DNA of 64,000 nucleotides. It comes from Macrostomum lignano. Taxonomy: Eukaryota. Where the stretch lies: contig NIVC01002093.1 in the NCBI GenBank assembly GCA_002269645.1, positions 124,001-188,000 of the forward strand, in the 5' to 3' direction. Each line of letters opens with the position of its first letter. Within the stretch, counting starts at the first letter, position 1. The position numbers were made by a program, and so were the translations under genes. Below are positions 3,772-46,403 of this stretch, one piece after another. The notes beneath the pieces were generated by a model. It made no database searches. It was given only the letters and a program-made list of their open reading frames with translations, and was not told the origin of the DNA.

Positions 3772-3774
<3 letters not shown>

Positions 3775-3863
<89 letters not shown>
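3775..3863. repeat. (CT)n microsatellite
   Basis: Direct reading. Confidence 0.98.
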
Positions 3864-3866
<3 letters not shown>

Positions 3867-4130: not shown

Positions 4131-4470
4131 ATACGGAAAAAATGTAAAACAATAAAAAGAATGGCTCACATTTGTAAATATAATTTTTTTAAACTGTATT
4201 ATATTTCAAACGAAAATTTTAATCAGCTTATTGACAGTTATTATCCGTTGTTCGTATGCTGGTTCGAATTTTTACTTTTTTTTCTGTTATATCGAATATA
4301 AATCGTGTATTCAGATTTGACTCCATTGAGCAAAGCTTTGACAAACAGACGCATACACGCACACACACGCATCACTAGCAAAGCAACATTGACAATTATA
4401 ATCACACACCGTTGGCATCTATTAGGACAAGTTTGACAGTTAATTAAGATTACTAATTTGTTGATCTATT
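4131..4470 (+). repeat. AT-rich module preceding heptad array 1 (duplicated at 8969-9367)
   Basis: atacggaaaaaatgtaaaacaataaaaa...gttaattaagattactaatttgttgatctatt is shared by both copies. Confidence 0.9.
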
Positions 4471-4473
4471 GAT

Positions 4474-4899
4474 GTGACCCGACTGACTGGTGTTGTGACC
4501 AAGTTGACTTGTGATGTGACCTTGGTGACTGGTGTTGTGACCACGTTGACTTGTGATGTGACCCGACTAAATAGTAATGTGACCATGTTGACTGGTGATG
4601 TGACCCAGTTGAATGGTGAGGTGACCCGACTGTCTAGTGATGTGACTCAGTTGAATTTTGATGTGACCCGACTGACTGGTGTTGTGACCACGTTGACTTG
4701 TGATGTGACCCGACTATCTAGTGATGTGACCATGTTGACTGGTGATGTGACACAGTTGAATGGTGATGTGACCCGACTGTCTGGTGATGTGACTCAGTTG
4801 ACTGTTGATGTGACCCGACTGACTGGTGATGTGACAACTTTGTATTGTATTTGTATTGTATTGTATTGTAGCGTATTGTACAACTTTGGGCTGGGTTAA
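4474..4899 (+). CDS. Heptad-repeat coiled-coil reading frame (L-x-x-D-V-T-x, ~17-18 units of 21 bp)
   Basis: Indel-free, stop-free 21-bp units with a 147-bp higher-order duplication (4529 vs 4676); no good ATG or splice acceptor. Confidence 0.4.
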   Translation: MTRLTGVVTKLTCDVTLVTGVVTTLTCDVTRLNSNVTMLTGDVTQLNGEVTRLSSDVTQLNFDVTRLTGVVTTLTCDVTRLSSDVTMLTGDVTQLNGDVTRLSGDVTQLTVDVTRLTGDVTTLYCICIVLYCSVLYNFGLG

Positions 4900-5150: not shown

Positions 5151-5500
5151 TCATCGATGTCGCAGTCGCCGTGTCTGGATCCTCGGGTTCATTAACGCCG
5201 AAGTCGCCGCATCTGCAGCCACAGTCGCTTTGGATGCCTGTCGTGACAATGCGTGTGCCCGGATACGATTGATAGTATGCGAGCTGACACAACTATTAGA
5301 GCCACTGCTAGGAATCCTATTTAACCGGCGTCGTTGATGTGTCGGCGGAGTTGACAAATGATGTTCGCTCGACAACTGTGATGACGAAGATGCATCTGAT
5401 ACAATTTCGCAGTCGGAGCGCACCATCTGTTGACGTCGCCTTTTACAACTGGGTTTGCTCGTCGGCGAAGCAAACGACGCGCCATCTTGAACACTCGGCC
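5151..5500 (-). CDS. Exon 2 of the PLDLS-repeat gene (basic/Ser-rich, KRRR NLS-like)
   Basis: Acceptor cacag| at 5501-5505; the phase-1 intron 5501-5696 joins in frame (..NGNK-R-PSVQDG..). Confidence 0.55.
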
Positions 5501-5696
5501 CTGTGATAATTATTTGTAAAAAAGACGCTAATTTATACAATTTAATCCTTTCATTCAACAAATCAAGCAAACAAGCAATCAATCAATCAATCAATCAGTC
5601 AGTTCAAACGCTCATGTATAACAGACCTGTGTCTATCAGTCATTTGAACTAGTTAAGCTTAGATATATTGATAAAATATAATCGTTTTCTACTCAC

Positions 5697-5820
5697 TTTT
5701 ATTGCCATTATTGGCTGTCTGCGACTTTGGCACTGTCGATGGCTCGTCAGCAGCGACAACAGCAGCAGCACCAGTAGCACCAGTAGCAGCATCAGCAGCA
5801 GCAGCAGCAGCAGCAACAGG
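5697..5820 (-). CDS. 3' part of exon 1 of the PLDLS gene, beyond the LINE insertion
   Basis: VAAAAAAADAATGATGAAAVVAADEPSTVPKSQTANNGNK continues the poly-Ala frame; GTGAGT donor at 5696-5691. Confidence 0.6.
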
Positions 5821-7295
5821 TATCCGAAGTTTGCAGAACAGTCGGCAACCGCTGCCGTCTCCTAGCGTGCCTCGCTGCCAGGTCGTGGGGCTGGTCTAAA
5901 GACAGTCTCCTAACTACCTTCAAAGCAATGCAACTCAGCATCCTGCACTACGCGTCACCAGCATGGCAACCCTGGCTAGCAGACACCGCCATGTCTTATC
6001 TCCAACGCGCGCAGAACCAGGCACTCCGTATTGTCACAGGTCAGCTTCGCACAACCCCGGCTGAGGCTCTCCACCTCGAGGCTGGAGTGTGCACCGTCGC
6101 TACCATGCGCGACCAACTCTGCCTCGCGGCGTACGAAAAAGCGCTGCGCCTCCCGGAGGACCACCCGCGCCACCGCGCGGCCGCGGCCCAGGTTCCGCAC
6201 CGCACGGCCAGAAACAGCTGGCGCCACCGCGCCCAGCAACTTCTGGCAAGAATGCCGGCAAACCTGGGCCGCCGCGAAGCCCTCCCACCGCTCCCCCGCT
6301 GCCCTTGGATCCACCTGGCTGCGGGCTGGACCGTGACGCGCTTGCTGTCGACCGTCGCCGTCAGACCCAGGCAGGCTGCTCACCCGACGACGCAACAAGA
6401 CAGCGCTGACTTAGCCAGGGACCAGGCGATATCATCCGTCCGCACGGCGAACGCTGACCTGGTTCTTTACACGGACGGCTCCGCCGAAGGCGGCTGCTCC
6501 GAGGGGGGCGCAGCATGCGTGGTCACCCGCCGCGGCGACCCCGCCTCCCCGCAGGTCGTCGACACCGTCGCTGCCCGCGGCGCCTCGCCGACCTGCAGCT
6601 TCGACGAGGAGCGCCGCGCCCTCGGACTGGCCATGGCCTGGCTCAACGACCATCAAGTCACCGGCCGAGTGTTGATCTGCTCCGACAGTCGCGCACTGCT
6701 CGACGCCCTCATGAGCATCGTGCCGAGATGCTCGCTCCCGGACTTGAACTGCCGGGTTGCCTCCCTCACTCTCCAGTGGATCCCAGCGCACTGCGGCATC
6801 CCTGGTAACGAGATGGCGGACGCAGCCGCCAAGAATGCCGCATCCATCGCTGGCGCGCCAGCGAGCACCTCGTACAGCAGCGCGGTGGCAGCGGTCAGGC
6901 GCGAGATCGGCGACCCGCCCCTGACCCACGCCCGCACGATTTCTGTGTACCGCGCGCTCAACCGGCAACGCGACCGCGCCGAACTTCAGAATCGTCAGGA
7001 TGCCGTCCTCCTGGCGAGGCTCCGCGCGGGCCACTGCAGCCTTCTCCGCGCGTACAGTCGCATCGTCAACCCGACGGCGGACCCCATTTGCCCACGCTGC
7101 GAGGGGGGCCCGGAAGACCTCGAGCACTGGCTCGGTTGCCCGGCCCTCCGGAGGCTCCGCCTCGAGCTGTTCGACGAGGACACCCTGGACCCCGGGATTC
7201 TGACCGTCGCCCCCGCGAGGTCGGTGGCGCTTGCGAGGCGAAGCCTCTGACTCCCTCGGCGCCTTTGCCCCCAACAACAACAACAACAACAACAA

Positions 7296-7300
<5 letters not shown>
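5821..7300 (+). mobile_element. 5'-truncated non-LTR retrotransposon (I-group-like) with RNase H and (CAA)n tail
   Basis: RT C-terminal region (LTTFKAMQLSILHYASPAW), RNase H motifs YTDGS, ICSDSRA, WIPAHCGIPGNEMAD, Cys/His motif CPRC..EHWLGC, tail at 7272-7300. Confidence 0.92.
5928..7250 (+). CDS. LINE ORF2 remnant (RT thumb, RNase H, zinc knuckle)
   Basis: Motifs listed for the element. Confidence 0.85.
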   Translation: MQLSILHYASPAWQPWLADTAMSYLQRAQNQALRIVTGQLRTTPAEALHLEAGVCTVATMRDQLCLAAYEKALRLPEDHPRHRAAAAQVPHRTARNSWRHRAQQLLARMPANLGRREALPPLPRCPWIHLAAGWTVTRLLSTVAVRPRQAAHPTTQQDSADLARDQAISSVRTANADLVLYTDGSAEGGCSEGGAACVVTRRGDPASPQVVDTVAARGASPTCSFDEERRALGLAMAWLNDHQVTGRVLICSDSRALLDALMSIVPRCSLPDLNCRVASLTLQWIPAHCGIPGNEMADAAAKNAASIAGAPASTSYSSAVAAVRREIGDPPLTHARTISVYRALNRQRDRAELQNRQDAVLLARLRAGHCSLLRAYSRIVNPTADPICPRCEGGPEDLEHWLGCPALRRLRLELFDEDTLDPGILTVAPARSVALARRSL

Positions 7301-7352
<52 letters not shown>

Positions 7353-8130
7353 CAGCAATAACAACAACAGCATCAGTAGCAGCATGGGCATCGGTCGGCA
7401 CAGACGCGCGGTTTGCATCGTCAGACTGTTGTCCAGTTGCTGTTGATAACGCAGCATCTAGATCGCAGTCGGCCGCGATTTTTCGAGTTTCAACAGCATC
7501 GTGTACATTGTCGGCCGAGGTATCCGATGCATGCACCAGTTTAGCGTACAGGTCGTTTACGATGGGTTCTAAACGAGTCGGTGTAGTTCGTTGAGCACCA
7601 TCTCCACAACCGGCAACGTTGTTACTAGGCGCATTATTAACAACAACAGCAGCTGTCGACGACAATTGTTGGTCAAGTCGATGCCGCGTATTGGCAATAC
7701 TGAAATCGAGGGGTTGCACCTGCTCGTAGGCATCATCGAGGACAGGGCTCGCCTTCTCGTCAGCATTGGACAAGTCGTCGTCGACACTCGAAGCGGCATC
7801 GGCGGCGGCGGCGGCGGCGGCGTTACGCATACTAAGATCCAGAGGTTGATCATAGAATGCAGCCGAATGCATGCTAAGATCCAGAGGTTGATCATAGAAT
7901 GCAGCCGAATGCATGCTAAGATCCAGAGGTTGATCATAGAATGCAGCCGAATGCATGCTAAGATCCAGAGGTTGATCATAGAATGCAGCCGAATGCATGC
8001 TAAGATCCAACGGTCGATCTTCAGCAGCAATTTCGTCACCGTCATTGTTGTTGTTGTTGTTGCTGTTGTTGATGTTGGCAGAGCGACGACACATTGTCGA
8101 TTTGCGAATTGACTGTTGTTGTTGCTGCAT
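7301..8130 (-). CDS. Exon 1 (5' part) of an unknown low-complexity protein with 5x PLDLS plus 1x PLDFS
   Basis: ORF 7066..8130 track; 42-bp repeat encoding PLDLSMHSAAFYDQ; poly-Q, poly-N and poly-A tracts. Confidence 0.7.
7827..8013 (-). repeat. 42-bp coding tandem repeat (14 aa), ~4.5 copies
   Basis: gcatgctaagatccagaggttgatcatagaatgcagccgaat repeated. Confidence 0.97.
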
Positions 8131-8181: not shown

Positions 8182-8304
<123 letters not shown>

Positions 8305-8968
8305 TATAGAATCAGATTCTATTCGTCCTTTTTTCGAGCTAGTTAGTCGAGCTTTAAGTAGAGGGTTGATGTCAAAATTACTCAGAGATATGTCTATGTC
8401 TTAACCTATTCAGATAATAGCCTGTCCAATGTGTACAGGATGCAATTGACAAATCGAGCGCACCACAAGTAGAGTTTTAAGTCAAAAAAATGTCTATGTG
8501 TTAACATAGTCTGATAATAAACTGTCTATGTTGTACAGTGTGCACTTGATAGATCGAGCGCGCATGTACCAAGGAGTTCTATAGCTAGTATAATGGATTG
8601 GAATCTTGCTTTACTTTTATATGCAATATTATGTGCAAATATAGAATCCAACTGACTAACAGACAATTGTCTATGGTTCAACCTACGATAAAGCCACCCC
8701 AGAGTGTATATTATAGCATTCTATGAGTGTATGCGCCCTGTATAGGAAACTTTTGTCTATGGGTTGAATGGAAATTCAAGCGTTTCCAAGTACAGTTTAA
8801 CTTTGAAGATCAATTGAAACAGTATAGCTGCACTTGTATACTGAATCAATCATTTAATGGTGTTTATGACTTTAACTGATTTACTAATGCCTACAAGAAT
8901 GCATAGTTTGAATCAAAAGCTAGTTTGTGTTTTCCTCAGGCAGATTTTCCAAGATAGAAATGTCCAAG

Positions 8969-9367
8969 ATACGGAAAAAATGTAAAACAATAAAAAAGAA
9001 TGGCTCGCATTTGTAAATTTAATTTTTATCTGAAACTATATTATATTTCAAACGAAAATTTTAATCAGCTTATTGACAGTTATTATCCGTTGTTCGTATG
9101 CTGGTTTGAATTTTTACTTTTTTTCTGCTATATCGAATATAAATCGTGTACTCAGATTTGACTCAATTGAGCAAAGCTTTGACAAACAGACGCATACACG
9201 CGCACACACACGCATACATACATACATACATATATACTTACACAATGTTAGCAGTTTTGATTACATTCATTAGCAAATCAACATTGACAATTAGAAACAC
9301 ACACATATTTGGCATCTATGAGGACAAGTTTGACAGTTAATTAAGATTACTAATTTGTTGATCTATT
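8969..9367 (+). repeat. Second copy of the AT-rich module
   Basis: Homologous to 4131-4470. Confidence 0.9.
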
Positions 9368-9401
9368 ACAGCCAAATTATTGTGTTGAGTGAGAATGAGA
9401 T

Positions 9402-10465
9402 TGACTGGTGATGTGACCGTGTTGACAGGTGATGTGAATATGTTCACTAGTGATGTGACCAAATTGAATGGTGATGTGACACAGTTAAATGGTGATGTGA
9501 CCCAGTTGAATGGTGATGTGACGAAGTTGAATGGTGATGTGACCCAGTTGAATGGTGATGTGACGAAGTTGAATGGTGATGTGACCCTGACTGACTGGTG
9601 ATGTGACACAGAATGACTGGTGATGTAACCAAGTTGAATGGTTATCTGACCAAGTTGAATGGTTATCTGACCCAGTTGAATGGTGATGTGACCCAGTTGA
9701 ATGGTGATGTGACCCAGACTGAATGGTGTTGTGACCCATACTGACTAGTGATGTGACCCAGTTGAATGGTGATGTGACCCAGACTGACTGGTGATATGAC
9801 CCATACTGACTGGTGATATGACACAGACTGAATGGTGATGTGACCCAGGCTGACTGGTGATGTGACTCAGGCTGACTGGTGATGTGACTCAGGCTGAATG
9901 GTGATGTGACCCAGGCTGACTGGTGATGTGACCCAGGCTGACTGGTGATGTGACCCAGACTGAATGGTGATATGACACAGACTAAATGGTGATGTTACCC
10001 ATACTGACTGGTGATGTGACCCCGACTGAATGGTGATGTGACCCATACTGAATGGTGATGTTACCCATACTGACTGGTGATGTGACCCATACTGAATGGT
10101 GATGTGACCCATACTGAATGGTGATGTTACCCATACTGACTGGTGATGTGACCCATACTGACTGGTGATGTGACCCAGGCTGACTGGTGATGTGACTCAG
10201 GCTGACTGATGATGTGACCCAGGCTGAATGGTGATGTGACACATACTGACTGGTGATGTGACCCAGACTGAATGGTGATGTGACCCATACTGACTGGTGA
10301 TGTGACTCAGGCTGACTGGTGATGTGACTCAGGCTGACTGGTGATGTGACTCAGGCTGACTGTTGATGTGACTCAGGCCGACTGGTGATGTGACTTAGGC
10401 TGACTGGTGATGTGACCCAGGCTGACTGGTGATGTGACCCAGATTGATATGTGATGTGACCACAG
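9402..10465 (+). repeat. Minisatellite related to heptad array 1: 21-bp units decaying into 19-20-bp units
   Basis: Core ggtgatgtgacc; the heptad frame stays open only to 9601. Confidence 0.95.
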
Positions 10466-10920
10466 TGACTAGTTAGCAGATTTGATTACAGTCACCAGCA
10501 AACCAACATTGACAATTATAATCACACACACACACACACACACACACATTTGGTACCTATGAAGACAAGTTTGACAGCAACCGGCTCTGGCTAAAACCTT
10601 GACCCATCTGAATTTGTGTGTGTGTGTACATGTCTTTGACAAAGTTTTGGCGTCAACAACTAGCAACGGAATATTGGTCAATAAACCACTTAAATATTCA
10701 TACAAACAAATCTTATAACGCATGCATAACGGTAACGGCATAATCTGTACACATACAATTATTTAACAATAATATGTACAAACCATGAGCAAAAATATAA
10801 TCGCATAAATAAACAATATATATGTACAAACGATTAAAAAATGGCAGAAGCAACATATAAAACATTGTGATCTTTCCTTACTTACTAATTAATATACAGC
10901 TTTCGGTTGGTTTATCTCAA

Positions 10921-13805
10921 TCAATTTTCCAATTTTAACAGCCAGTCATGTGCACCAGTCGTGTGCATGTTCACCAGTGTGCATCGACCATACTCAACAA
11001 TGCAGACAGTCATGTTCACCCGCATGCACCGACCATGCTCGCCACTACAAACAGCCATGTTCACTCGAACCGAACCGTCGACCACGAGCCTCGAATAGTC
11101 ACCAGTGACTCGAGCCGTCCCGTTGGAAGTAGGGAAGATATAGCGCATTTCATCGGGCACTTGCACTTTCTTCGAGCGCAGGCGTGACAAACTTTTCGCA
11201 CCATAGAATGAACGATTTACACAATCGTCTCGGTGACAACAGTGTTGCACCACGGCCTCGCGAACCTTGCTTGTGTGGCACCTCGCTTGGTGGTAATCGC
11301 GTTATGACGGTATCCATACTGGAGCCTTTGTTTTTTAACGCGTCTTCGAGGTGATGCCGACACAGATAGATCCACGGCAATACACGATTGCTATGGAATA
11401 TTGCAGTGCCCAAGAATGCCAGCTCGCGACTGATTGGCATTATGAAATCGCGCCATCTTCCTCGCGGAGAATTCGTTTGATTGACCAGCCGTGCAATGTC
11501 GGACCAGGTACCTTCTGTTTGTAAATTTGACCAGGAATGTTTCTCGATCATATTAACCAATTTCAGTAGCCTGTTTCTTACGAGGTCATACTCTTCGACA
11601 GACAGGAACAACTCGGTGTATTTTTGTTGTCGCGCATCATCATTCAGATGGTACCGATTGTCCTGTTGTCGGCTGACTCGTCCGAGTTGCGCCTGTGTGT
11701 ATTATAAGAGAAGCAAAAATTCATCTTTATGTATCATCATTATCATCATTATCGTTCTTATCATCATCAGCATCGTCATCACCACCATCATATGCACAAT
11801 CATAGTTTATAGTTCTAATCTACACATAATATAGATTATAATTTCAAAAATATAATCAAGCAAACAAACAAACAAACAAACAGGTACTTACGTAGACAGC
11901 ATCGATTCGAGGTATTAGAAAAGCAGACACTGTCTTTCGATGGTATAGATTGCTGGGCAACTTCTTTACTCCGCTGGCTATTCCATGTAATAGTCTGGCC
12001 GCGGTAGTGACGTCATCTGCTGCGCCAGTGAATACGCCGTTGGGTGGTTCCGATAACCGGAGTGCCCTAATTACAGTGATGGCACCGAAATCAGACTCAT
12101 TTTCCAATAGAGTCTTGACTGCGGCTAGGATGCACTGTAATTGGCATGCTTTTACTCCGGCGGTACTTGCTTGCCAGACACCGCGGGTTTTCATCTCTGT
12201 CAAATCTGTGGCCACTTGGTGCGGAGCATTTAACCAAGTCTCCAGACTGACGCCCAGCTTATGTTTTAATTTGGCAAGCGTTCCTCGAACCGCAGTGGTC
12301 AGTTGTTTCCGACGATGAACATGCGACTTGTTTTCTTCAATCTTGTTATTGATTTTCCACCAAATATCGACAAGTCGCTTAGTCATGTCCTCGGCGATAG
12401 ACTGTGCTTCACCATAGTCGACCATGGCAAGTGGATCATCAGTCTCGCTCACACTGCTGTCGGAACCACCCGCATTGTCATCCGCTTCGTCCTGGATGTC
12501 GGTGTCGGAACCAACCGCATCAGCGGCTTGGTCGCCGTCAGGTGGCGCTGGTACGACAATGACTCTGCCTTGCTCGGACCCTGCATTGTCATTGTCCTTG
12601 GCACATTGATCGATCGCCTCCAATAAGCTGGCAACAATTTCGTCATCTGTTGTCGCGACGTCGTTACCAACAGCGATCTCTTCTCCTACTTCGTGGTGCC
12701 GTTGTACCGCGCTGGCCAATCTACCGACATCCGGACGCTTGTTGAACTGACCGATGCTCGTCTCGAGACCACGTGTCAGCTGTCTAGACGCCAATTCGAC
12801 GTGACCACGGAGTACACGCGTCACATCGACGATGTCCATGTCGATGGTCTCCATGTCTGGACGCAGCTGTTCTGCAAGCATGTCAAGCTGACAAGCTGTT
12901 TTCTGCAGATCAGTCAGATAGCCTGTTGGTTGTTTAATCGTGAAACAACACCCATTTTTACTCTATAATTAGTACACATCAATAATTGTACAATAATATT
13001 ATGCAATCCTATCTACTGATAGAGAAAAACTGAACGATTAAATATTATTACCTTGAAATTGGCGCACCTTTCGTATCATCGCATCGGTGATGCTGTTGCC
13101 GACTGAATCACTGTTAGACGATTGATGAACACGGTCGTCGCCAGATGGTCTCTGTTTGAATCGATCCGATCCAACTTGGGTGCCATCGTCTGTGATGTAC
13201 AACTCTTCGACAGACTCGACGACACACGGTCTAACATGATCAGGTGCGGTATTGGTCGACCCGGTTGCGAACTTAGCTGCTGATTGGCGTTCGGTGTTCG
13301 ATGCCGGGGTCACCGTTTGAGCGCGGCGTTCACTGTTGACTGTCTTGGTCGCAGTTTGAAAATTGGAATCCCTGCTTGGTCCAACGTCTACACCGTCGAG
13401 TAAACCACTTGTAGACGGACCAGCTGATAAACTGGCAACCGGTAGTTCAGCAGTCTGTTGAGCAATCACATCTGTCGGGCGTGCGTTTGTTGCGTCAGGC
13501 TTTCGCTTGTATGATCGTTTTATATGTCTTTCGATACATCGAACGACCCGATGGCAATGTGGACACATTGTCATGCCATATGTGTCACCATCGCGCTGCA
13601 GCCTTACCGCCTTCCAGACAGCAATCGCCCTAACAAATATTGGCAACTCGGAAGATGGACCATTCTTTTCTTCCACTGTAGCCAAGTCGAAATTGCGGAC
13701 GAATTCTATATGACGTCTTACTAGATGACGCGCCATACTCCGCTAACTAAACAACTGTGCGCAAACAGGACACGCCGCGTTGTCGTTACGGTGATTGTCG
13801 GCCAT
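10921..13805 (-). pseudogene. Three-exon gene: C2H2 zinc fingers, acidic linker, helical C-terminal domain (possibly tyrosine-recombinase-like)
   Basis: ATG at 13805; exons 13805-13052, 12922-11892 and 11692-~11150; both GT-AG introns keep frame (phase 1, phase 0); CPVC..RHLVRRH and CPHC..RHIKRSY; in-frame TAG at 13745-13743; probable frameshift near 11300. The recombinase call is weak. Confidence 0.6.
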
Positions 13806-17134: not shown

Positions 17135-18481
17135 CGAGGTGTATTCAAAAAGTTCTTTTCGGTGCCCTACAAAACTGAACACAAAACAACTGGAACTATG
17201 AAAACACTGTTAGATTGCTTAACATGATTCGGTCACTCAACATATTCACCGCCAATGTCTTTGCACTTCTGCCAGCGATTTACCAGGCCTCTGATTCCGG
17301 AACTCACACCACTCGCGTCCGTTTGGCGAACAGCTTGATTGCATGCAGCCTCAATGTGCTCGACGCTGTCGAATCGAATGCCCCGAAGGTGCTTCTTCAC
17401 AGATGGAAATAAGAAGAAGTCGCACGGCGACAAATCAGGCGAATAGGCTGGATGTTGGAGCACTTCCCATCCCCATTTGCTCAGGAGTTCCACGACGTTG
17501 TGCTTGCGATGTGCTGGCGCATTGTCGTGCAGCAGGATCACGCCAGATTCCAGCAGATCAGGGCGCTTCTTTCGTATTGCTGGGCGCAGCTTCTCCTGCA
17601 GAATCCACTTGTAGTAGTCCCCATTGACGGTGGTTCCTTGTGGGACTGCCCAGTTCAGCAGGATTCCTTGGGAATCAAAAAACATGACGTGCATGATCTT
17701 CATCGCGCCCTGCTTCCTGATGGCCTTCTGAGGTCTTGGAGAATGTGCTGGAAGCCATTCGGCAGACTGGGCCTTTGTCTCAGGATCCCAGCTGTAAACC
17801 CACGTCTCGTCTCCAGCTACAATTCTTGATAGAAAATCCTCCCCTTCTCGATGGAACCGACGCAGGTGGCTGCTTGAAGCCACAGTTCGCTGCATCTTTT
17901 GCTCACCTGTCAGCAGGTGTGGCACCCACTTGCAAAACTTTTTTCTGCAGGTGAAGACGCTCCGTCAGAATGGTGTGGACGCTTCCTACTGACACACCAA
18001 CGTCTTCTGCCAACTCTTCGCAAGTCCGTCGCCGATCATCATCCAGGAGCTCTTGCACTTTCTTCACAACAGTCTCGTTGGTTGCAGTCATCGGCCTTCC
18101 AGAGCGATCATTGTCCTCAACGCTCTCTCTTCCCTCAGCGAACAGCCGGTACCATTTTCGAACTGTCTGCTCAGTTGGTGCACATTTGCCAAGCACTTGC
18201 TGAAGCTCCCTAAACATATCCGGTGGCTTTTTTCCTTGCAGAAACTGAAACTTCATCAAGCTTCGAACGTCTTGCTTTGAAAATGATTCAGCCATGGCCA
18301 AGAAATTGAGTGGTAGCTGATAGAAATGTTCGCTGCTCTAACATAGTTGCAAACTGAGACTTAAAACCCTAGGAACGTTTAGGCCATAGACATAACTTGG
18401 TGAAATCGCTAAAATTCTGTTTACAAGGCTTTTTAAAAATAAATGCCAAAGGACCGAAAAGAACTTTTTGAATACACCTCG
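17135..18481 (-). mobile_element. Full-length mariner (DD34D) transposon, 1347 bp
   Basis: Perfect 29-bp TIRs cgaggtgtattcaaaaagttcttttcggt; TA duplications at 17133-4 and 18482-3. Confidence 0.97.
17233..18301 (-). pseudogene. Mariner transposase with one frameshift near 17940
   Basis: HTH region; WVPHLL after the shift; GDETWVY, LHDNAPAH, YSPDLSPCDFFLF. Confidence 0.95.
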
Positions 18482-19905: not shown

Positions 19906-20760
19906 CTCTTAGGGCCGCTCGCAGTTGGGCTACTGTTAACCGGTCGAGATCAGACATGGCGCCAGATGAAAAATCTTAGAGCTAAAAAAATTGAGCTCAC
20001 GCAGGCAGCCAAAAAATGACAAGTCGCCTGTACTTCACAAATGCACAGTTGCTCGAATGACCTAATCGCATGACCACACTCACCTAGGCTCACTTTACAG
20101 GGCTGCGTCAGCATCTGGGTTCCCCCAACACTAACCGCGTGCACACGACATTGGTGGGAGGGGCGGGAATCCCTCGCCGGATGTACACTCGCTGGAGGCC
20201 CACCCTGCTGGATGTACACTCGCTGGAGGCCCACCCCGCTGGAGGTACACTCGCTGGAGGCCCACCCTGCTGGAGGTACACTCGCTGGACGCCCACCCTG
20301 CCGGATGTACACTTGCTGGAGGCCCACCCCGCTGGAGGTACACCTGGACCCCGCTGGAGGTACACCTGGACCCCGCTGGAGGTACACCCCGGGGGAGGTG
20401 GTACACCCCGAGGGAGCAGCTTGCCGCGTCGGTGCTAGAGGCCGACATCAGCCCGACGGACCTTCGCAAAATGACCCTATCTGCCAGTTTATAGTAGTTT
20501 TGTCAAAGAGAAATTAATTATTATTTTATTTGTTATTGAGTATTTATGGAAATTAGCTCGTATTATAGTTTCAGAAATCAATTTTTTTCTTTAAAAAAAA
20601 GGTTTATTTAATTTTATTTTTAACAGAAAATTTTTTTTTGTCCTCCTGCCGCCTCCTTTCTGCCGCCTCTGCCGCCGCGTCCGCCCGTGGTGCTCGTGAG
20701 TCCTTGTCGTTACTCCTGAAATGTTGGTTTACTAAAAGATTATACATTCTGTAACATAAT
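19906..20760 (-). repeat. Near-identical duplicate of 24096-24875 (gag 5' end and leader)
   Basis: Shared MSDLDRLTVAQLRAALR start, shared leader minisatellite and shared gccgccgcgtccgcccgtggtgctc block. Confidence 0.93.
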
Positions 20761-21074
20761 CAAAATGATCAAAATTTCTTTGGCCGCGGCCATGGCCCCC
20801 TTGCCCCCCCCCCTCTGGATCTGCCCCTGGTGTCAGACAATGTATTTTCGATGGGGAAAAACAAGAAAGGGTTTGCCATAAAAAACTATGAGAAACTGTT
20901 AAGGTGGACGCCGAAAAAGCGGGCAACCTCAATAAACAACCCACCTCAAAGAGCGCTCAATCTTACTCTCCCCAGTTAATGGCTCAGCCAATGACGAACG
21001 AGTTACACACAGATTCTCGCGGGACCCCTCGCGAGATCTCGCGAGAATTGAGCCTTTCCTCGCGAACCCAACTG

Positions 21075-21240
21075 TAGATGGTTTCATGCTCATTCCATGG
21101 ATGGCAGAATAGCCATACATGATCATCGATGTATTACTTTCCATACATGGACATGTATGATTGTTAATTCTTGCTGTATATACTACTCGTTAAGGCACAT
21201 TTGAGTTTTAAAGAAATAACCAAAAGAACTATAGCTCAAA
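21075..21240 (+). repeat. Duplicate of 28127-28315
   Basis: tagatggtttcatgctcattcc...gaactatagctcaaa in both. Confidence 0.9.
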
Positions 21241-21633
21241 CTAGCCATTTAGCCCCCTCCGGGTGGCTTCTTAGCAGTTTAGCGCTTGTCTATAAGCAGT
21301 TTTGCACAGTCGCTGAGCAAATCTCACTAATATTCGAGAAGTTCTGCAGTAGCAAATCTCTAAGCAGTTGTACACCAATTTTACTGAGAGCTAAAAATTT
21401 CTAAAAAGTTACATTTCTTAATGTTTGAAACTTTGCAATGTCAATTCATTTATAGTTCTTTTATGATTATTCGTTATTTTCAAATCCTCACCAGATTAGC
21501 ACTATTCTCCCACATTAGCCATACACCCCCAGATTAGCCCCACTTCCCCCAGATTAGCACTACTCCCCCCATATTAGCCGCACACCCCCAGATTAGCCCC
21601 ACTCTCCCCAGATTAGCACTCAGCCCAGATTAG
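21241..21633 (-). mobile_element. 3' end of a non-autonomous Helitron in minus orientation
   Basis: Reverse complement of ~48595-48990, including the hairpin and CTAG|T. Confidence 0.85.
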
Positions 21634-21965
21634 TGTATGCCTTAGGTATTGCCTACTAGCTCTATGAAAGTATGAAGTTGCTAAGCTGCTAAATTTAATA
21701 AGACTGAATTGGGATAAAACTGCCGATATGTATTAAAAATTGATTAGTGAACTGTATTAAATGCTGAGAGAAAAAAGATTCTTGAAAGGATCCTTTATTT
21801 CAGTTTGCTAAATATACTGAGGAGCCCGCCGAGAGGAGAACTGCAGACTGCTGAGGGGAACTGCAGATTGGCGAAAGGATCATTCATGCAGACTGCAAAG
21901 GGACAAACTGAAAACTGCTTAGGTAGTTCTTTCAGACTTAATTAAGTTCTAGGCTGCTGAGGATA
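21634..21965 (+). mobile_element. Internal Helitron-family fragment
   Basis: Matches ~49760-50165. Confidence 0.75.
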
Positions 21966-23372
21966 GTGGCGCCGCCGCGTCATCAACTGCCGCACCATTA
22001 CGCCGCTGGCTCTGCGGTCCGACCATCGGCTGCTCATCTGCGACCTTCGGCTTCGGGACCCGCTCTACCGTCCGCCAAAGCGGCCACCGCGGCGCTACTA
22101 CCGCGCGCTCAGGGACGCCGAGACGCGACGTCGCTTTGCCGGTGCCTTTGTCACTGCGCTGGGCGACAAGCGTGGAGGAGCCGAGTACGCGGAGGTGAGC
22201 GCTGCAGTTCGAGCCGCTGCGGAGCAAGCAGTCCCGCTGATGCGACCGGCCCAGCGCGGGCAGCCGGTCTGGCAGGACGACCCCGCGATCGACGAAGCGA
22301 GGGAAGATCTGGAGAGGCTCCGTCTGAGTGGGCGGCAAACTCGCGAGGCGGAGGAGGCTCTGGCGGCTGTCTACCTGCAGCGGCAGCAGTCCGCTGTCGA
22401 TGACGCCATCTAAGCCGTCTCTGCCGCAGGGCCCGATGCCAGAGGGCGCGTGGCCTGGTCCGTCATCAACACTCTAACGGGGCGAAAGCGGCGCATCGCG
22501 CTCAACCTGGCAGGCGACACTCCGGATGAGCGCAGGAACAAGCTGCGCGAGTTCTTCGCCGCCATTGTCAACGCGCCGCCCCTCCGCTTCCAGAAAATCT
22601 GAGGCTGCCGCCGGAGACGCCGTTGCCGGCGGAGGAGAGCTTCAACGTTGCCCCAGTCAGCACAGCCGACGTTGTGAAGTTCGCTCGGCAGTCGCCGGGC
22701 GGCAAAGCGCTTGGTCCGGACGAGGTGCCCACCGAGGCGCTGCAAATCCACTGCGTGGCCACTGAGGTTGCCAGAGTGATGAACCGCGTGCTTTCCGGTG
22801 AGGTGGCGCCAAACGAATGGACCACGGCGCACATCGTCGCCATTCCAAAGAAGCCGGGCACCACCAAGCTCGAGGAGCATCGAGGCATCTGCCTACAGTC
22901 CTGCGCCGCGAAGCTGTTCAACCGCATGCTGCTATCGCGGTTACAGCCTGTGCTGGACCCGTACCTGCGGCCTGAGCAGAACGGATTCCGGCCCCATCGC
23001 GGCACGGTGACGCAGATCCTGGCTCTTCGGCGAGTCATCGAGGAGGCGCGCATCCGCCAGTTGACCCTGATCCTGATCTTCGTCGATTTCAGGAAGGCTT
23101 TCGACTCGGTCGTGAGGGACGCGCTCCCAGAGGTGCTCCGTGCGTACAACGTGCCAGAGCTGCTGATTTCTGCTGTCATGGCGCTGTACCACGGCACGAC
23201 GGCGGCTGTCTCAACACCGGACGGCCTATCAGATTTCTTCGAGACATCCTCCGGGGTGCTCCAGGGAGATACGCTAGCGCCGTTCCTATTTATTCTGGTG
23301 CTTGACTAGGTGCTACGGACTGCTCTGCCTTCCAACGACAACGGCTTCCTGCTGCGGCGACGCGTGGGTCGT
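21966..23372 (+). mobile_element. RTE-clade non-LTR retrotransposon fragment (endonuclease end to RT), truncated at both ends
   Basis: SDHRLL; GPDEVP; QNGFRPHRGT; FVDFRKAFDSV; GVLQGDTLAPFLF; stops and frameshifts. Confidence 0.9.
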
Positions 23373-24145
23373 GGGTCTGGGCTGTCCCAGTCTCTTTGCC
23401 GCTCGTGCTGTAACAGACGCATGTCCTGATCGTATCGTAGGACGACATTCCAATCGTAGTCTGCTTCCATGAGCTCGCCGATATGTATGTTGAAATAGAG
23501 ATAAGCCTTCAAGCGCCGCACATCGATGCTTCCATCGCTTCCTTTTGAGACGAACTGGTTGGACTCAAGCAGCTGCTGCATTATTCTGGCGTTAGCAGCG
23601 ATCCATTGCCCAGTGCTGATGCTGTCAAGACTGGGCGCACTGCTCTTCGCCGCGCCCCGGTCGCGATCATGCGGCAGCCAAGCCATCTGCTCCCGTCTGC
23701 CATCCACGAAGTTTGGGATGAGCAGAGGGCGTCGTGCCGGCCGCGCCTCCGCCGAAAGCGAGCCAAAAAGTGCCGAAATCAGGTCGACCTCTCCAGCTGT
23801 GGCGGCGGCATGCAGACCGATTTCCTGCCGGAGTTGCGCCTCTCGCTTCTTCAGTTCTAGCAGCTCGATCCGCGACCGAGCTTGCTGAATTTCGCTGTCA
23901 AGTCGGCTCACTTGGGCGATGTTGGCGGTGTCAACATTATCCGATTCTTCCCCGCTCAGCAGCTGATTCATCGCAGCATCTGCTTCGTCCCCTTCTGCAT
24001 CATCTGGGACTTCGGCGTCACCTGGCTGTGGTGGAGCAGCTTGAAGCCGCTCAATAAGCTCTTGCTTGTTTCCCGAAACCGGTAGGCCATTGTCTCTTAG
24101 GGCCGCTCGCAGTTGGGCTACTGTTAACCGGTCGAGATCAGACAT
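23372..24145 (-). CDS. SAP-domain gag-like ORF1 of a DIRS/Ngaro-type retroelement, 3'-truncated
   Basis: LTVAQLRAALRDNGLPVSGNKQELIERL (SAP), coiled coil, QWIAANARIM...YLYFNIHIGEL..YDWNVVLRYDQDMR..W. Confidence 0.65.
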
Positions 24146-24384
24146 GGTGCCAGATGAAAAATCTTAGAGCTAAAAAAATTGAGCTCACGCAGGCAGCCAA
24201 AAAATGACAAGTCGCCTGTACGAGTACTTCACAAATGCACAGTTGCTCGAATGACCTAATCGCATGACCACACTCACCTAGGCTCACTTTACAGGGCTGC
24301 GTCAGCATCTGGGTTCCCCCAACACTAACCGCGTGCACACGACATTGGTGGGAGGGGCGGGAATCCCTCGCCGGATGTACACTC

Positions 24385-24610
24385 GCTGGAGGCCCACCCT
24401 GCTGGATGTACACTCGCTGGAGGCCCACCCCGCTGGAGGTACACTCGCTGGAGGCCCACCCTGCTGGAGGTACACTCGCTGGACGCCCACCCTGCCGGAT
24501 GTACACTTGCTGGAGGCCCACCCCGCTGGAGGTACACCTGGACCCCGCTGGAGGTACACTCACTGGACGCCCACCCCGCTGGAGGTACACCCCGGGGGAG
24601 GTGGTACACC
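24385..24610. repeat. GC-rich minisatellite in the gag leader (gtacactcgctggaggcccaccc); also ~20190-20410
   Basis: Direct reading. Confidence 0.85.
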
Positions 24611-25011
24611 CCGAGGGAGCAGCTTGCCGCGTCGGTGCTAGAGGCCGACATCAGCCCGACGGACCTTCGCAAAACGACCCTATCTGCCAGTTTATAGTAG
24701 TTTTGTCAAAGAGAAATTAATTATTATTTTATTTGTTATTTTTAACAGAAAATTTTTTGTCCATTTTTTTCTTCCTGCCGCCTCTGCCGCCGCGTCCGCC
24801 CGTGGTGCTCACGAGTCCTTGTCGTTACTCCTGAAATGTTGGTTTACTAAAAGATTATAAATTCTGTAACATAATATATGATTACATCATAATTGCTATA
24901 AGCTAAAGCTGATGTCTTGCTAATTGGGAGTCTGCTTTTGGGGTTTGTTTGCCTCATAAAAAAAGAAATACAAACTGAATATGTCAGTTTCAAGGTGCCG
25001 GGTTGAATCAC

Positions 25012-25794
25012 TCATAATGACCAATGGGTTTGTATTTTGCGTTTTTTTCGAAAGTCCGGTACCCTGAGCCAATCGGAGAGACTGACAAGTATGGACTTTC
25101 CGCAAGGCACGCGTTGCCCCCCCCTCCCCCAGAGACCTGTGAGAATGCCAGAAAACAACTCGTAGTTGCACAGCGCGTATTTAAGTTGCGGGTTTACCTT
25201 GCACTTCCGCTTGGCAGCCCGGGCCTCCCTCGCCGGCTGCGTTTGCAGCCGTCGCTTCTCCTTCTGCGTCAGCGGCGGCGGCGGCGGCGGGGGTGTCGGC
25301 GGCGGTGGCGGAGATGTCGGCGGCGGCGGCGGGGGTGTCGGCGGCGGCAGCGAAGGTGTCAGCGGCGGTGGCGGAGATGTCGGCGGCGGTGGCGGAGGTG
25401 TCAGCGGATGCGGAGGTGTCGGCGAATGCGGCGGCGGTGGCGGAGGTGTCGGCGGCGGTGGCGGAGTTGTCAGCGGCGGTGGCGGAGGTGTCGGCGGCGG
25501 TGGCGGAGATGCTGGCGGCGGCAGCGGAGGTGTCGGCGGATGCGGAGGTGTCGGCGGATGCGGAGGTGTCGGCGAATGCGGCGGCGGTGGCGGAGGTGTC
25601 GGCGGCGGTGGCGGAGATGTCGGCGGCGGAGGTGTCGGCGGCGGTGGCGGAGATGTCGGCGGCGGCAGCGGAGGTGTCGGCGGATGCGGAGGTGTTGCTG
25701 CTGCTGCGGCGGCTGGTGCTGCTGCTGCTGCGGCTGGTGTTGCTGCTGCTGCTGCTGCTGCTCCGGCGCCGGCGGTCGCGGCGGCAGTGTGCAA
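25012..25794 (-). CDS. Ala/Pro-rich low-complexity ORF with a basic tail, unknown
   Basis: Built on a (GGC)n-derived repeat open in several frames; may be non-coding. Confidence 0.25.
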   Translation of the reverse strand: MHTAAATAGAGAAAAAAATPAAAAAAPAAAAAATPPHPPTPPLPPPTSPPPPPTPPPPTSPPPPPTPPPPPPHSPTPPHPPTPPHPPTPPLPPPASPPPPPTPPPPPLTTPPPPPTPPPPPPHSPTPPHPLTPPPPPPTSPPPPLTPSLPPPTPPPPPPTSPPPPPTPPPPPPPLTQKEKRRLQTQPAREARAAKRKCKVNPQLKYALCNYELFSGILTGLWGRGGQRVPCGKSILVSLSDWLRVPDFRKKRKIQTHWSL

Positions 25795-26150
25795 CAGTGC
25801 TTGCGCAAAAAAACTAATATGAATTTAGTTCATATGTTCATAATGTTCTAATGTTTATAAATTTAGAATGTCATAGCACGGGAACCAAGGGAGATGATGG
25901 CATCGTGATTCCGAGGAAAGTGGAAGTTTATTTTTTTTAGTAAAGAGCGCTATTTGACAATTACTTGGAAATCGAAAATATTTGTACAAATTTTAGTTTC
26001 TTATATCACTTTAGTCACAGTTGCGTCTGATACATCCTACTTCTAAGTAAGAACAGTTAAAATCCTTAAATCTGTTCTAATGCACATTGCCAGGCAATGG
26101 CAAAGAAAAAATTGCCAAACAATGAAAAATTAGCTTTCAGCAAAAACTTT

Positions 26151-32500: not shown

Positions 32501-35500
32501 TCGCCTTCTGATCAAAAGGCGGAGTAGCCGCACTGTAGGCACTAGGACCAGGTTTAGGATAGGCGTAAGGTCCCAGGTTCGAGTCTGCCTCGCAGCGGAC
32601 AATTAAAATTGAATTAATTATTTTATTTTAGCTTGTGCTTTGATTAATTGGAACTTTTATGCTTAATTAACAAGGCACACTTAATGAACTATTTTTGCTA
32701 TTTGGCACAAGTCGCTAAGCAAAGTTGATTTGTAAAAACTGCTTCGAGTACATGTATTACGAGCGTACTGATCCCATCAATGGGTATATGGCACAGTTCC
32801 ATGAAAGTATGAAATTGCTAAACTGCAGACCATTCTGAAAAAAACTGCTGAAGGTATTGCTAAATGCTGAGTTTTGCAAGACTGCCGATATGTATCGAAA
32901 TCGTTAATGGTACAGTTGTAGACCGAAAATGAAATGACTGCAGACTGCTGAGGGGAACTGCAGACTGTCGAAGGGATCATTGCAGATTGCAAAGGGGAAA
33001 CAACTGCAAACTGCTGGAGATACTGCTGGATACGCTCATAGTTCCTCCAGACTTATGAGCGTATAGCGGCAAACTGCCGAGAGGAAAACTGCCGACTAAT
33101 TGGGAGATAATGGCAGACTTCTGAAGCTAATAACTAACTATTGAGTTTTGAGTGGATATTAACTGTGAAAGATTGAGTACAAGTTGTTTAGAGGATTACT
33201 GCGGGCTGCTAAGTGAAATCTTTTTTGCTAAGGGGACAATTCTATGCCGCTGAGGGTATACATGCTTAATTTTAATAAAAGTTGTAGAATGCAATGAATG
33301 TTGAAGATACTCTTGCTGGGGGCTGCGTTATTCTTCTAGAGCAGTACTAATCTGCTGTACATGTAAGTACTAATTTGAAAAGGGTATTACTAATCTGGGT
33401 GAAGAGTGCTAATCTGACGTAAAATGAAGTAATAAATATGCAAGACGATTGCAAATCAAATTTAAACTGCAAGTTGCAAAGATTTCAAATGGTTTCGATT
33501 ATTGAGAAGCATATGGAGATCAGTGGCCATCTGCTTGCAGATTTTGCGGAACTGTGCCGATGAACCATTGCTAAACTGCTGGTAAACCATTGCTAAACTG
33601 CTGGTGAAGCATTGCTAAACTGCTGGTAAACCATTGCTAAACTGCTGGTGAAGCATTGCTAAACTGCTGGTGAACCATTGCTAAACTGCTGGTAAACCAT
33701 TGCTAAAGTGATGGTGAACCACTGCAATTTTTTAATAAATGCTACTTTAAACAGAAGAAAACTCAACGAAACAAAAAGCAAAGAAATAATCACCATGTCA
33801 ACCATAAGAGAGGCGGTCTGTCGAGCACAAAAGACTCAATGGGAAATGCTAAGATGTCAGGGCTGGTATGGGAAACTGCTTTGATGTCAAGACTCATGGG
33901 AGAATTTCTACGATCTCAAGGCTTACGGGGGAATTGCTATAATGATGTGATTCTGGAGAGAATTGCTTCCATTCCAAGTTTCATTTGTGAAATTGCTGAG
34001 TTATAAAGGCTCATTGGAAAATTGCTTTGCTGTCAAAGCTCATGGTGATAATTACTCGAATGCTGTGGCTGTTGGGGAATTCCCGAGATTGTTAGGGTAA
34101 GGTAAGGGTTAAACCATAAAAGAATTGGCCTGTCAAACATTAAAGACTCATTGGGGAATGACAAAGCTCATGGAAGATATCTGAATGACTGAATTGTACT
34201 GTGGCTCAAGGCTTAGGGGGAATTGCTGTAATTGCAACACATGAGGATGTTGTGGAAATTGTGTTGCTCAAAAATGAGTTGCTATAATATCAAGGCTCAT
34301 TGGGAAATCGCTGAGATGTCAAAGCTCACTGGGATCCCTGTACTGCTGTAGGCTGTGACTCATATGTTATATCTGAGATGCCAAGGTTTACAGGGGAATG
34401 GCTTAGATTTCAAAGACTCCTAAAGGGAATAGCTGAAATTCACGAAATGACAAGGTTCATTGGGCAATTGTTGAAATGCTGTGGTTCATGGTGGGAATTG
34501 CTGAAATGCTGTGAATTGGCAGGGTTAGGGTTCAATAATAAGACATCATAATTGTCAAAGTGCCAAGACAACATAAGGTTAGTCGCTAAATTTTCAGGCT
34601 CATGGGTAAATTGCTTATAAGCTTTCAAAAGCTCATAGTAAAATTGCTGGAATGCTTGGACTGAGAGGGAGTTGCTGAAATGCTGTGACTCGGCTGCAGG
34701 TTAGGGTTAGGGTTAGAGTTATGGTTATGGTTTTGGTTAAATTATAGAGCGATCGTCGTATCAATCATTAATGATTTATCAAGGAATTGCTAAGATTAAA
34801 GGCTCTTGGGGTGAATTACTTGAATACTTTGGCTCTTTTGAGAATTGCTGACAGGTAAAGGCTTTCGATGAAATTTAGATTTCAAAGCTTATGAGGAATT
34901 TACTTTAATGCTGAGGCTCAAGGCTCATGGGGGAAATTGCTAACATGCCAAGACTCACTTATGGTTTAGGGTTAGGGGCTTAGGTGAGTTTCGGTTCAAT
35001 CAAGATTAACCGCTGTCAACCATCAATTAAAGACTTGCTAAGATAGCAAAGCTCATAGGGGTATTGCTGAGTTGACAAGGCTCACAAAGAAATTGCTGAG
35101 TTATCAAGGCTCATAAGAGGATTGCTGAATTCTTGGGAGAGGGGAGTTGGGTTGTTAGGATGTCAAAGCTCACTGCGCTGGGAGAATGCTGAGATTTCAT
35201 GGCTTATTGGGAGCATTGCAAAGATGTGAAGGCTTACTAGGGGTATTGCTGAGATCTCAAGGCTTACTGGGGGAATGCTGGGATGTGAAGGCTTACTAGG
35301 GTTATTGCTGAGATCTCAAGGCTTACTGCGGGAATGCTGAGATTTTAAGGCTTACTGAGGGAATGCTGAGATGTTAAGACTTACTGGGGGAATGCTGAGA
35401 TGTTAAGGCTTACTGGGGGAATGCTGAGATGTTAAGGCTTACTGGGGGAATGCTGTGATGTCAAGGCTTACTGGGAGAATTACTGAGATGTCAAGGCTTA

Positions 35501-39318: not shown

Positions 39319-39889
39319 TCCTATATACTAAAAATGAGTTGTCTGTGGGTATGCGATAGATTTCAGAAAAATTGGCTCAATCGATTTTCTTCAAACTTGC
39401 ACCATTCGATCAGAAATTTTCCTGGGACGGTACATGCATCTTGGCTAAGAAATTGTTCAATGTTAAAGGGATTAAATATTCGAAAAACATGCTTTTTTGC
39501 AAAGGTCAAGCTAAATTTTCGACTTGAAATGCATTTTAAGAATGCTAGAGAAAAAACAGACTGGCTGAAATCCGATTGTGATAAAGATTGCATCACAACA
39601 AGTTGAAAACAGTGTCAAAGAAATGCACACACGACTTGAATGAAATTGCGTAACCATATTGCCAACTTAAATTGAGACTGATTCTGGCTGACTGAGAAAT
39701 TGATTATGTCATAACTTTTTACTCCAATTGACTTGCTGTAAGAATTGAATTATAAGGGCCACAAGTCATGTTCTCCAATTGAAAAGAGATAGCCGGATGC
39801 AAGCAGACTAATGTAGCGACCTTGGTTCGAATCTTAGTAGTGAAAAATGTTTTTTTTTATTAAAACACCTTAAAAAACACAAAATGCGA

Positions 39890-46355: not shown

Positions 46356-46386
<31 letters not shown>

Positions 46387-46403
46387 CTTCATCATCATCA
46401 TCA

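Follow-up and report, generated by a model that had tools for sequence, protein, structure and literature searches.

A 64-kb stretch of contig NIVC01002093.1 (hereinafter the window) contains, on the minus strand, an open reading frame (ORF) in which a 42-bp tandem repeat encodes five consecutive copies of the peptide PLDLS. The question raised by this locus is whether such a repeat gives rise to a multivalent ligand of the corepressor CtBP and, if so, how the ligand would act. The explanation that we favor, to which we assign a probability of about 0.35, is that the locus is a lineage-restricted, two-exon host gene for a disordered protein that would serve as an untethered multivalent CtBP ligand and would relieve CtBP-dependent repression.

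The repeat was detected with Tandem Repeats Finder at 7827-8009 (4.4 copies, 99% matches, score 359), within a minus-strand ORF of 354 amino acids (aa), running from 8130 to 7066 and starting with MQQQQQSIRKSTMCRRSANINNSNNNNNNDGDEIAAEDR. The order of peptides across the array is EDRPLDLSMHSAAFYDQ, the PLDLSMHSAAFYDQ units and PLDLSMRNAAAA; PLDLSMHSAAFYDQ is a 14-residue unit that occurs four times and is followed by PLDLSMRN. The PLDLS motif is found at residues 40, 54, 68, 82 and 96, that is, with a 14-residue spacing (minus-strand positions 7999-8013, 7957-7971, 7915-7929, 7873-7887 and 7831-7845), and PLDFS follows at residue 140, 44 residues downstream of the fifth PLDLS, preceded by Q as in the repeat units. 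The features concerned are:

7827..8013, minus strand: coding minisatellite with five PLDLS motifs and 9-residue linkers (MHSAAFYDQ); Tandem Repeats Finder, repeat-family comparison and pattern match
7699..7713, minus strand: sixth, diverged motif PLDFS (CCC CTC GAT TTC AGT); pattern match and translation

The sequence-only reading that drew attention to this region had described five PLDLS motifs at 14-residue spacing, built by a 42-bp repeat, with a sixth, PLDFS, downstream, and was accurate in both coordinates and description. The array has the properties of a coding minisatellite, namely, a period that is a multiple of three (42), head-to-tail arrangement, high identity between units and location inside an open frame. 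Back-translation of P-L-D-[LF]-S yields six matches in the window, all of them in this ORF, compared to 0.11 expected from shuffled sequences; the motif and the array are real and far exceed the chance expectation. The ELM class LIG_CtBP_PxDLS_1 is defined by the regular expression P[LVIPME][DENS][LM][VASTRG]; the five exact PLDLS copies match this pattern, and PLDFS fails at position 4.

The copies of the motif are not identical at the nucleotide level. The first is encoded by CCG TTG GAT CTT AGC and copies 2-4 by CCT CTG GAT CTT AGC; copy 5 ends with AGT, and copy 6 reads CCC CTC GAT TTC AGT. By our own count, the motif copies show eight nucleotide differences, six of which are synonymous, compared to about 27% expected; so are all three differences inside the array alone, where the choice of copies carries no selection bias. 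Small as these numbers are, they point to constraint on the peptide. Across 126 bp, no difference separates the three central 42-bp units, and the substitutions in the edge units are all synonymous and confined to the motif, a pattern that suggests recent expansion or homogenization of the minisatellite. Q/R-P-L-D-[LF]-S is preserved in both the edge copy and the sixth one, although their flanks differ. The ancestral state probably consisted of two motifs 14 residues apart and the distal PLDFS, and variation in the copy number of the 42-bp unit appears likely.

Other motif assignments were considered as well. The 14-residue unit does not fit the PIP box, the clathrin box or the Sin3 AAxxL motif. 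In the sixth motif, PLDFSIANT (7699-7719, minus strand), the 'FSIxN' part recalls the beginning of eh1, the Groucho-binding motif (FSIxxIL); an Engrailed eh1 reading of DFSIANT was rejected given that the terminal I-L is absent.

Three of the six frames are open across the 42-bp array; hence the array alone cannot fix the frame, and the unique flanks have to decide. In the 456 nt of unique sequence that follow the array, G accounts for 47, 11 and 17% of codon positions 1, 2 and 3, respectively, and T for 41% of position 3. A single frame of the six is open in 7385-7826, and the probability of finding no stop codon in shuffled sequence is 0.0016. For 7399-7800, a span that excludes an imperfect triplet repeat at the end of the unique region, the chi-square value for 3-periodicity is 60.6, which was reached by none of the 5000 shuffles, and the codon usage is diverse; the periodicity of each of three separate blocks of 100-150 nt in the unique region was reached by 2 of 5000 shuffles. 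Ranked against all 456-nt segments of the 64-kb sequence, the region stands alongside pure trinucleotide arrays and above bona fide coding regions of long interspersed nuclear elements (LINEs). The putative second exon described below is less periodic (chi-square 13.8), yet it is open with P = 0.006. Taken together, these statistics make it quite probable that the gene is, or very recently was, protein-coding in this frame.

The predicted gene consists of two exons, the first of which is split by a LINE in the opposite orientation. Its components are as follows:

7300..8130, minus strand: exon 1 before the LINE, 277 codons, with the ATG at 8130, poly-Q/poly-N, the PLDLS array, an acidic unique region and poly-Ala; ORF list and translation
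7300..7344, minus strand: poly-Ala tract (GCT)15, equivalent to a (CAG)n microsatellite on the plus strand, the target of the LINE; sequence, repeat finding and translation
5821..7299, plus strand: 5'-truncated retrotransposon of the type without long terminal repeats (non-LTR), antisense in the gene, with approximate boundaries within the microsatellite; Pfam, relatives and GC content
7066..7299, minus strand: read-through into the antisense LINE, comprising V9, encoded by (GTT)9, and 68 unrelated residues, with the stop at 7066-7068; tail of the ORF 7066..8130
5697..5819, minus strand: exon 1 after the LINE, where poly-Ala resumes (AAAAAAADAATGATGAAAVVAADEPSTVPKSQTANNGNK), ending at a GTGAGT donor; sequence and translation
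5501..5696, minus strand: putative intron of 196 nt, GTGAGT...ttatcacAG, phase 1; read directly from the sequence
5151..5500, minus strand: putative exon 2, a basic tail with KRRR, RRR and one predicted helix (5190-5282), with the stop at 5151-5153; ORF list, translation and AlphaFold2
8182..8301, no strand assigned: (AG)60, or (CT)60 on the gene strand, 52 bp upstream of the ATG, a putative 5' untranslated region (UTR) or promoter; Tandem Repeats Finder

The putative donor AAAA/GTGAGT at 5696 and the acceptor ttatcacag/G at 5501/5500 would join exon 1 in phase to an open frame of 143 codons. This frame contains SCKRRRQQ, HQRRRL and a basic C-terminus, RLRHR followed by the stop codon. The KRRR cluster that had been assigned to a second exon is indeed present, at 5433-5444, and is reached in phase through the GTGAGT...CAG intron as read from the sequence. 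With the LINE removed, the protein would comprise about 430 aa, a value that is approximate in that the junction lies inside a repeat, so that the exact number of alanines is not recoverable. The N-terminal 300 residues include 41 D+E vs 15 K+R, and the last 116 residues include 6 D+E vs 20 K+R.

The inserted block is identified as a 5'-truncated non-LTR retrotransposon by its GC contrast, an ORF for RNase H, relatives that combine RVT_1 with RNase_H, and its (CAA)9 tail. The GC content of the block is 63% vs about 43% in the flanks. The block retains an intact 440-aa C-terminal ORF (5928-7250) that includes RNase H (Pfam RNase_H, 5e-11) and a Cys/His C-terminal motif; the reverse transcriptase (RT) part is absent from this copy, and a short 3' UTR is followed by the (CAA)9 tail at 7272-7300. 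The best of the relatives carrying RVT_1 and RNase_H are 42-44% identical (ENA/JGI assemblies), and the named relatives, at about 30% identity, are all molluscs. The window contains one copy of this LINE.

Translation from exon 1 into the LINE ends 78 codons into the antisense sequence, well ahead of the donor at 5696. At best, this allele would encode a truncated protein that includes the motifs and lacks both KRRR and the C-terminal helix; more likely, its transcript would be a substrate for nonsense-mediated decay. Because the LINE ORF, the part of exon 1 beyond the insertion and exon 2 all are still open frames, the insertion must be recent and may be polymorphic. The sequence-only reading had proposed to look for uninterrupted copies; the single copy of the gene within these 64 kb is broken and would be left without exon 2.

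The predicted protein shows little sign of globular structure. No Pfam family matches it with an E-value better than 0.09, and there are two chance-level matches at E <= 1. AlphaFold2, run without an alignment, assigns to exon 1 a mean predicted local distance difference test score (pLDDT) of 47.8, with about 40 and no secondary structure for residues 1-105, which contain the array. Exon 2 reaches a mean pLDDT of 61.6; an isolated helix at residues 73-103 scores 80-89, and the remainder is below 60. With the reservation that a single-sequence model is weak evidence, the motifs can be placed in an accessible, disordered region. The earlier description of the protein as disordered agrees with the pLDDT of about 40 over the array and the lack of any folded domain, and its statement that there is no DNA-binding domain is borne out by both Pfam and the sequence searches of the PDB. 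The latter returned only chance-level matches; no chain, those of RAI2 constructs included if such are deposited, matched at E <= 10.

The rejoined protein of 432 aa, compared with 5.8 billion proteins, gave no match at E <= 0.01, a search in which poly-Ala words probably saturated the candidates; after removal of low-complexity segments, there were no matches to the same collection at E <= 1. When exon 1 was compared with 1.84 billion representatives, 27 matches were obtained and dismissed as spurious, being unrelated tandem-repeat proteins that aligned only at residues 38-117; exon 2 was covered by the searches of the 5.8 billion proteins only. The exact 42-bp unit is absent from metagenome and viral contigs, and protein-guided locus searches of these contigs detected no relatives. 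Five ORFs of the window, looked up by exact match in public assemblies, had no entry there. As far as public data reach, the protein is an orphan.

What could such a protein do? CtBP has a cleft into which PXDLS motifs dock, and the canonical form, PLDLS, is present in adenovirus E1A and CtIP (PMC11209466) and in the central motif of ZEB (PMC2749851), in agreement with what the sequence-only reading had stated about this motif. Under the explanation that we favor, a young, in-frame 42-bp minisatellite would have multiplied a canonical PXDLS motif to five, with a sixth, degenerate copy further on, in a protein that before its disruption was about 430 aa long, acidic in its N-terminal half and basic in its C-terminal tail, which resembles a nuclear localization signal. 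If transcribed and spliced as modeled, the gene would produce a polypeptide for which the basic exon 2 would supply nuclear import and in which the PLDLS array would dock into the PXDLS cleft of CtBP. The protein is envisaged to work without a tether: like MCRIP1, it would compete with DNA-bound repressors, and, like RAI2, it might cross-link or polymerize CtBP tetramers through its array; CtBP-dependent repression would thereby be relieved. The untethered mode is suggested by the lack of a DNA-binding domain, the presence of several equivalent sites and the fact that CtBP is a tetramer, and the 9-residue linkers are within one residue of the spacing shown to bridge two CtBP tetramers, namely, 10 residues in RAI2. 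A multivalent, domain-less CtBP ligand of this kind would employ a mechanism that has direct experimental precedents in RAI2 (PMC11187106) and MCRIP1 (PMC6586819).

Several considerations weigh against this interpretation. The argument from synonymous changes rests on eight differences, and the sixth motif was chosen for its resemblance to the others. The 100% identity of the three central units implies that the five-fold valency is very recent, and it could be the product of neutral slippage. The gene present in the window is disrupted, with the LINE splitting exon 1, and its transcription is something that we infer. A host CtBP with a PXDLS cleft is assumed, on the grounds that the mobile elements are of animal type (mariner, the mollusc-related LINE and a LINE relative that adjoins a gene with an immunoglobulin (Ig) domain). 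Finally, none of the searched collections yielded a homolog, and the one hint that the motif is conserved comes from within the gene, namely, the mostly synonymous differences between its copies.

Among the competing explanations, the one that survives best is that the ORF is non-functional, either fortuitous or newborn, or else a dead pseudogene, and that a chance PLDLS was amplified by neutral slippage of the 42-bp unit. We regard this as possible although doubtful. It would account for the failure to find homologs among the 5.8 or 1.84 billion proteins, given that the 27 matches align to the repeat segment only, and it draws support from the three frames open across the array and from the flanking triplet microsatellites, which themselves yield periodicity and open frames. 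The unique part of the ORF is harder to accommodate, however, in that it has one open frame and strong 3-periodicity with diverse codons in each of its three blocks. The GT-AG intron in phase with the 143-codon downstream frame and the mostly synonymous nature of the differences between the motif copies likewise speak for a gene. The interruption by the LINE and the location in a window made up nearly entirely of satellites and transposons are compatible with a dead or accidental ORF, but the two halves that flank the LINE both remain open, which indicates that the disruption is recent.

A clearly weaker case can be made for a tethered adaptor or repressor, in which the basic C-terminal helix and tail would anchor the protein to DNA, to chromatin or to a transcription factor, and CtBP, recruited to that site by the PLDLS array, would repress. 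Most of the known PXDLS proteins are DNA-bound repressors (PMC6586819, PMC9890238), and exon 2, with 20 K+R in 116 residues and a confidently predicted helix of 31 residues (pLDDT 80-89), could conceivably provide the tether. Nevertheless, this helix is short and isolated, and neither Pfam nor the PDB sequence searches reveal a DNA-binding domain, so that this arrangement seems unlikely.

We are similarly skeptical of the notion that the protein is real and disordered but its 14-residue repeat is unrelated to CtBP and serves another partner, a structural role or condensation, with the resemblance to PLDLS being coincidental. The motif is just five residues long, the entire 14-residue unit (PLDLSMHSAAFYDQ) rather than the motif alone has been amplified, and the CtBP of the source organism is assumed. 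Set against this are the five exact canonical copies of PLDLS, the same as in E1A, CtIP and the central motif of ZEB (PMC11209466, PMC2749851), and the fact that neither the edge copy, which is older, nor the sixth one has lost Q/R-P-L-D-[LF]-S despite the different flanks.

The remaining explanation depends on the repeats that flank the gene:

4131..4848, plus strand: dispersed repeat, left copy, composed of a unique segment of about 340 bp and a 21-bp minisatellite, flanking the gene; repeat comparison
8969..10473, plus strand: right copy of the same dispersed repeat, with a 22-bp minisatellite of 49 units; repeat comparison

The unique parts of the two copies are about 95% identical, and a partial third copy is located at 10472-10608. 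The unit of the minisatellite is 21/22 bp (GTGATGTGACCCGACTGACTG), with 17 units in the left copy and 49 in the right one. An interpretation of these copies as LTRs or as carriers of terminal inverted repeats (TIRs) was discarded, as TG...CA ends and terminal inverted repeats are lacking and the only inverted matches around the gene are AG/TC microsatellites. In our reading, the flanking copies belong to a dispersed repeat that bears satellite arrays and do not delimit a gene-carrying element.

That the gene is the cargo of a selfish mobile element that manipulates host silencing is very improbable despite its location between two direct repeat copies (4131-4848 and 8969-10473) with unique parts about 95% identical: the unit encodes no transposase, reverse transcriptase or integrase other than the interrupting, antisense, 5'-truncated LINE, the repeat boundaries have neither TG...CA ends nor TIRs and the inverted matches amount to AG/TC microsatellites, the partial third copy is easier to reconcile with a dispersed satellite-bearing repeat than with LTRs, and there is neither a relative of the gene in viral contigs nor a second copy in the window. 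The selfish origin is the part of the sequence-only reading that finds no support, inasmuch as the sole mobile element touching the gene is the antisense LINE by which it is interrupted and the flanking direct repeats lack the hallmarks of a transposon; what stands is the repeat with its frame and sixth motif, the model of two exons, the disorder and the lack of a DNA-binding domain.

The immediate vicinity of the gene has some additional features. Translation of the dispersed repeat produces long stop-free 'VT.L.GD' repeats in several frames. The (AG)60 tract at 8182-8301 and a (TC)46 tract at 3772-3864 are in inverted orientation, about 4.3 kb apart. Upstream of the gene, at 8390-8567, there are two diverged copies, of about 100 bp, of TGTCTATG...GATAATA...TGTACAG...GATCGAGCGC, followed at 8670-8770 by TGTCTATGG-like pieces; these may be repeated regulatory sequences or a transposon remnant.

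The window as a whole is dominated by minisatellites and transposons; besides many arrays, it contains what is left of a mariner and another two LINE-like elements. Rfam gave no matches. The remnant of a mariner-type transposase (17233-17925, minus strand; HDNAPAH...YSPDLSPCDFFLF) indicates an animal genome, and the combination of mariner, the molluscan affinity of the named LINE relatives and the Ig-domain gene adjoining a related LINE suggests an invertebrate. A second LINE (43635-46406; RVT_1, 2.7e-29), in which the RT and RNase H ORFs overlap in different frames, suggesting a frameshift, has an (ATC)17 tail and encodes a protein 28% identical to that of the LINE in the gene. Two direct repeats, 97% identical over 647 bp (19906-20537 and 24094-24740), each with 31-bp minisatellites, enclose a GC-rich block with an RT fragment (22623-23309, plus strand) and a SAP-domain ORF (23306-24145, minus strand); the region 19906-24740 resembles a retroelement framed by an LTR-like or split-array structure. 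On the minus strand of 11150-13736, consecutive ORFs of 153, 341 and 232 aa match no Pfam family, and the 232-aa ORF contains a zinc-finger-like stretch, CPHCH...H...H; this could be an unclassified transposon or a host gene.

The other elements of the window are repeats. At 25012-25860, GGC-rich repeats of 21/42 bp give rise to ORFs of 170-275 aa in at least 4 frames on both strands (Pro-, Gly- and Arg/Cys-rich), which are almost certainly repeat artifacts rather than genes. Large arrays are located at 39889-42844 (23 bp x 128), 48085-48624 (17 bp x 32), 52711-53850 (17 bp x 66) and 35178-35800 (29 bp x 21), and many array families of the 31-39 kb region reappear at 46-53 kb with their order unchanged, which implies segmental duplication of a satellite-rich block. 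A short GGTTAG/GGTTAT array at 34699-34739 is interstitial and telomere-like (TTAGGG-type).

Returning to the explanation that we favor, if the array binds CtBP, the gene would represent a natural, pentavalent and independently arisen counterpart of the two-site protein RAI2, for which it was reported in 2024 that a master corepressor is switched off by polymerization. Expansion of the minisatellite could then shift the valency in single steps, and the locus would offer a ready series for studying the effects of the number of short linear motifs (SLiMs) and of the 9-residue linker on filament vs network assembly of CtBP; it would also be a case of a de novo or orphan gene gaining regulatory power through one short motif. 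If the array does not bind CtBP, we are dealing with another low-complexity ORF in a satellite-rich region. A more specific scenario, in which the protein is a taxon-restricted CtBP polymerizer, similar but unrelated to RAI2, with a valency of 2 to 5 or more set by the unstable 42-bp minisatellite, strikes us as rather improbable. Were it correct, individuals or lineages would differ in the strength of CtBP cross-linking and inactivation, and this would be a convergent instance of multivalent, SLiM-driven inactivation of a corepressor with a built-in genetic dial.

Comparison with known systems puts these possibilities in perspective. The 48-bp variable number tandem repeat in exon 3 of DRD4 is a coding minisatellite through which a short linear motif varies in copy number. 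The array described here resembles it in having an in-frame unit, of a length divisible by three, that multiplies a peptide motif, and in both cases near-identical units imply ongoing change in copy number; the motif and the partner are different, and here one haplotype is seen.

Among the CtBP ligands, one motif is enough for binding (PMC11187106), and in Drosophila, 50-aa tiles with PxDLS act as CtBP-dependent repression domains (PMC9890238). The ZEB proteins (ZEB1/ZEB2) are similar to the predicted protein in possessing several PLDLS-like motifs within about 100 residues, all three of which add to CtBP binding and the central one of which is an identical PLDLS (PMC2749851). In contrast to the predicted protein, ZEB is a DNA-binding repressor with zinc fingers and a homeodomain, and its motifs are mutually different and anciently conserved rather than a recent tandem repeat. 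Viral regulators, namely, adenovirus E1A, EBNA3C of Epstein-Barr virus and Meq of Marek's disease virus, use the same five-residue motif, and an E1A peptide is able to dislodge the cellular partners of CtBP (PMC11209466); these viral regulatory proteins differ in having single or bipartite motifs, and the viral contigs contain no relatives of the protein analyzed here.

The closest parallels are with two domain-less proteins. MCRIP1 (FAM195B), a protein of 97 aa with a single PxDLS and no other known domain, is untethered and competitively blocks the binding of CtBP to ZEB1 and to Foxp proteins (Foxp1/2) (PMC6586819). It differs in having one C-terminal motif, and Pfam and the search of the 5.8 billion proteins give no indication of homology to the MCRIP (FAM195) family. 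Human RAI2 (retinoic acid-induced 2) contains a disordered region in which two copies of ALDLS are separated by 21 residues. The two copies engage CtBP simultaneously, each with a dissociation constant of about 5 µM and with only an approximately five-fold gain when together; with tetrameric CtBP, the tetramers stack into filaments, nuclear foci are formed, and repression is relieved (PMC11187106). In the delta-11 variant of RAI2, shortening of the linker to 10 residues leaves affinity and stoichiometry intact, and the filaments are even better ordered (PMC11187106); the objection that a 14-residue spacing is too tight for simultaneous occupancy of neighboring sites was dropped accordingly. 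No homology with RAI2 is detectable in Pfam, the 5.8 and 1.84 billion proteins or the PDB sequences. The likeness lies in the architecture, that is, a domain-less, disordered protein with identical, closely spaced xLDLS motifs, separated by 9 residues here vs 21 or 10 in RAI2. The differences are that the predicted protein has five canonical PLDLS motifs compared to two non-canonical ALDLS, that its valency derives from a near-perfect 42-bp minisatellite, and that its putative role as a CtBP ligand is read from the motif only. Disordered, domain-less CtBP ligands with multiple PXDLS motifs are already known; what would be new in this case is the origin of five canonical sites from a coding minisatellite in an orphan gene.

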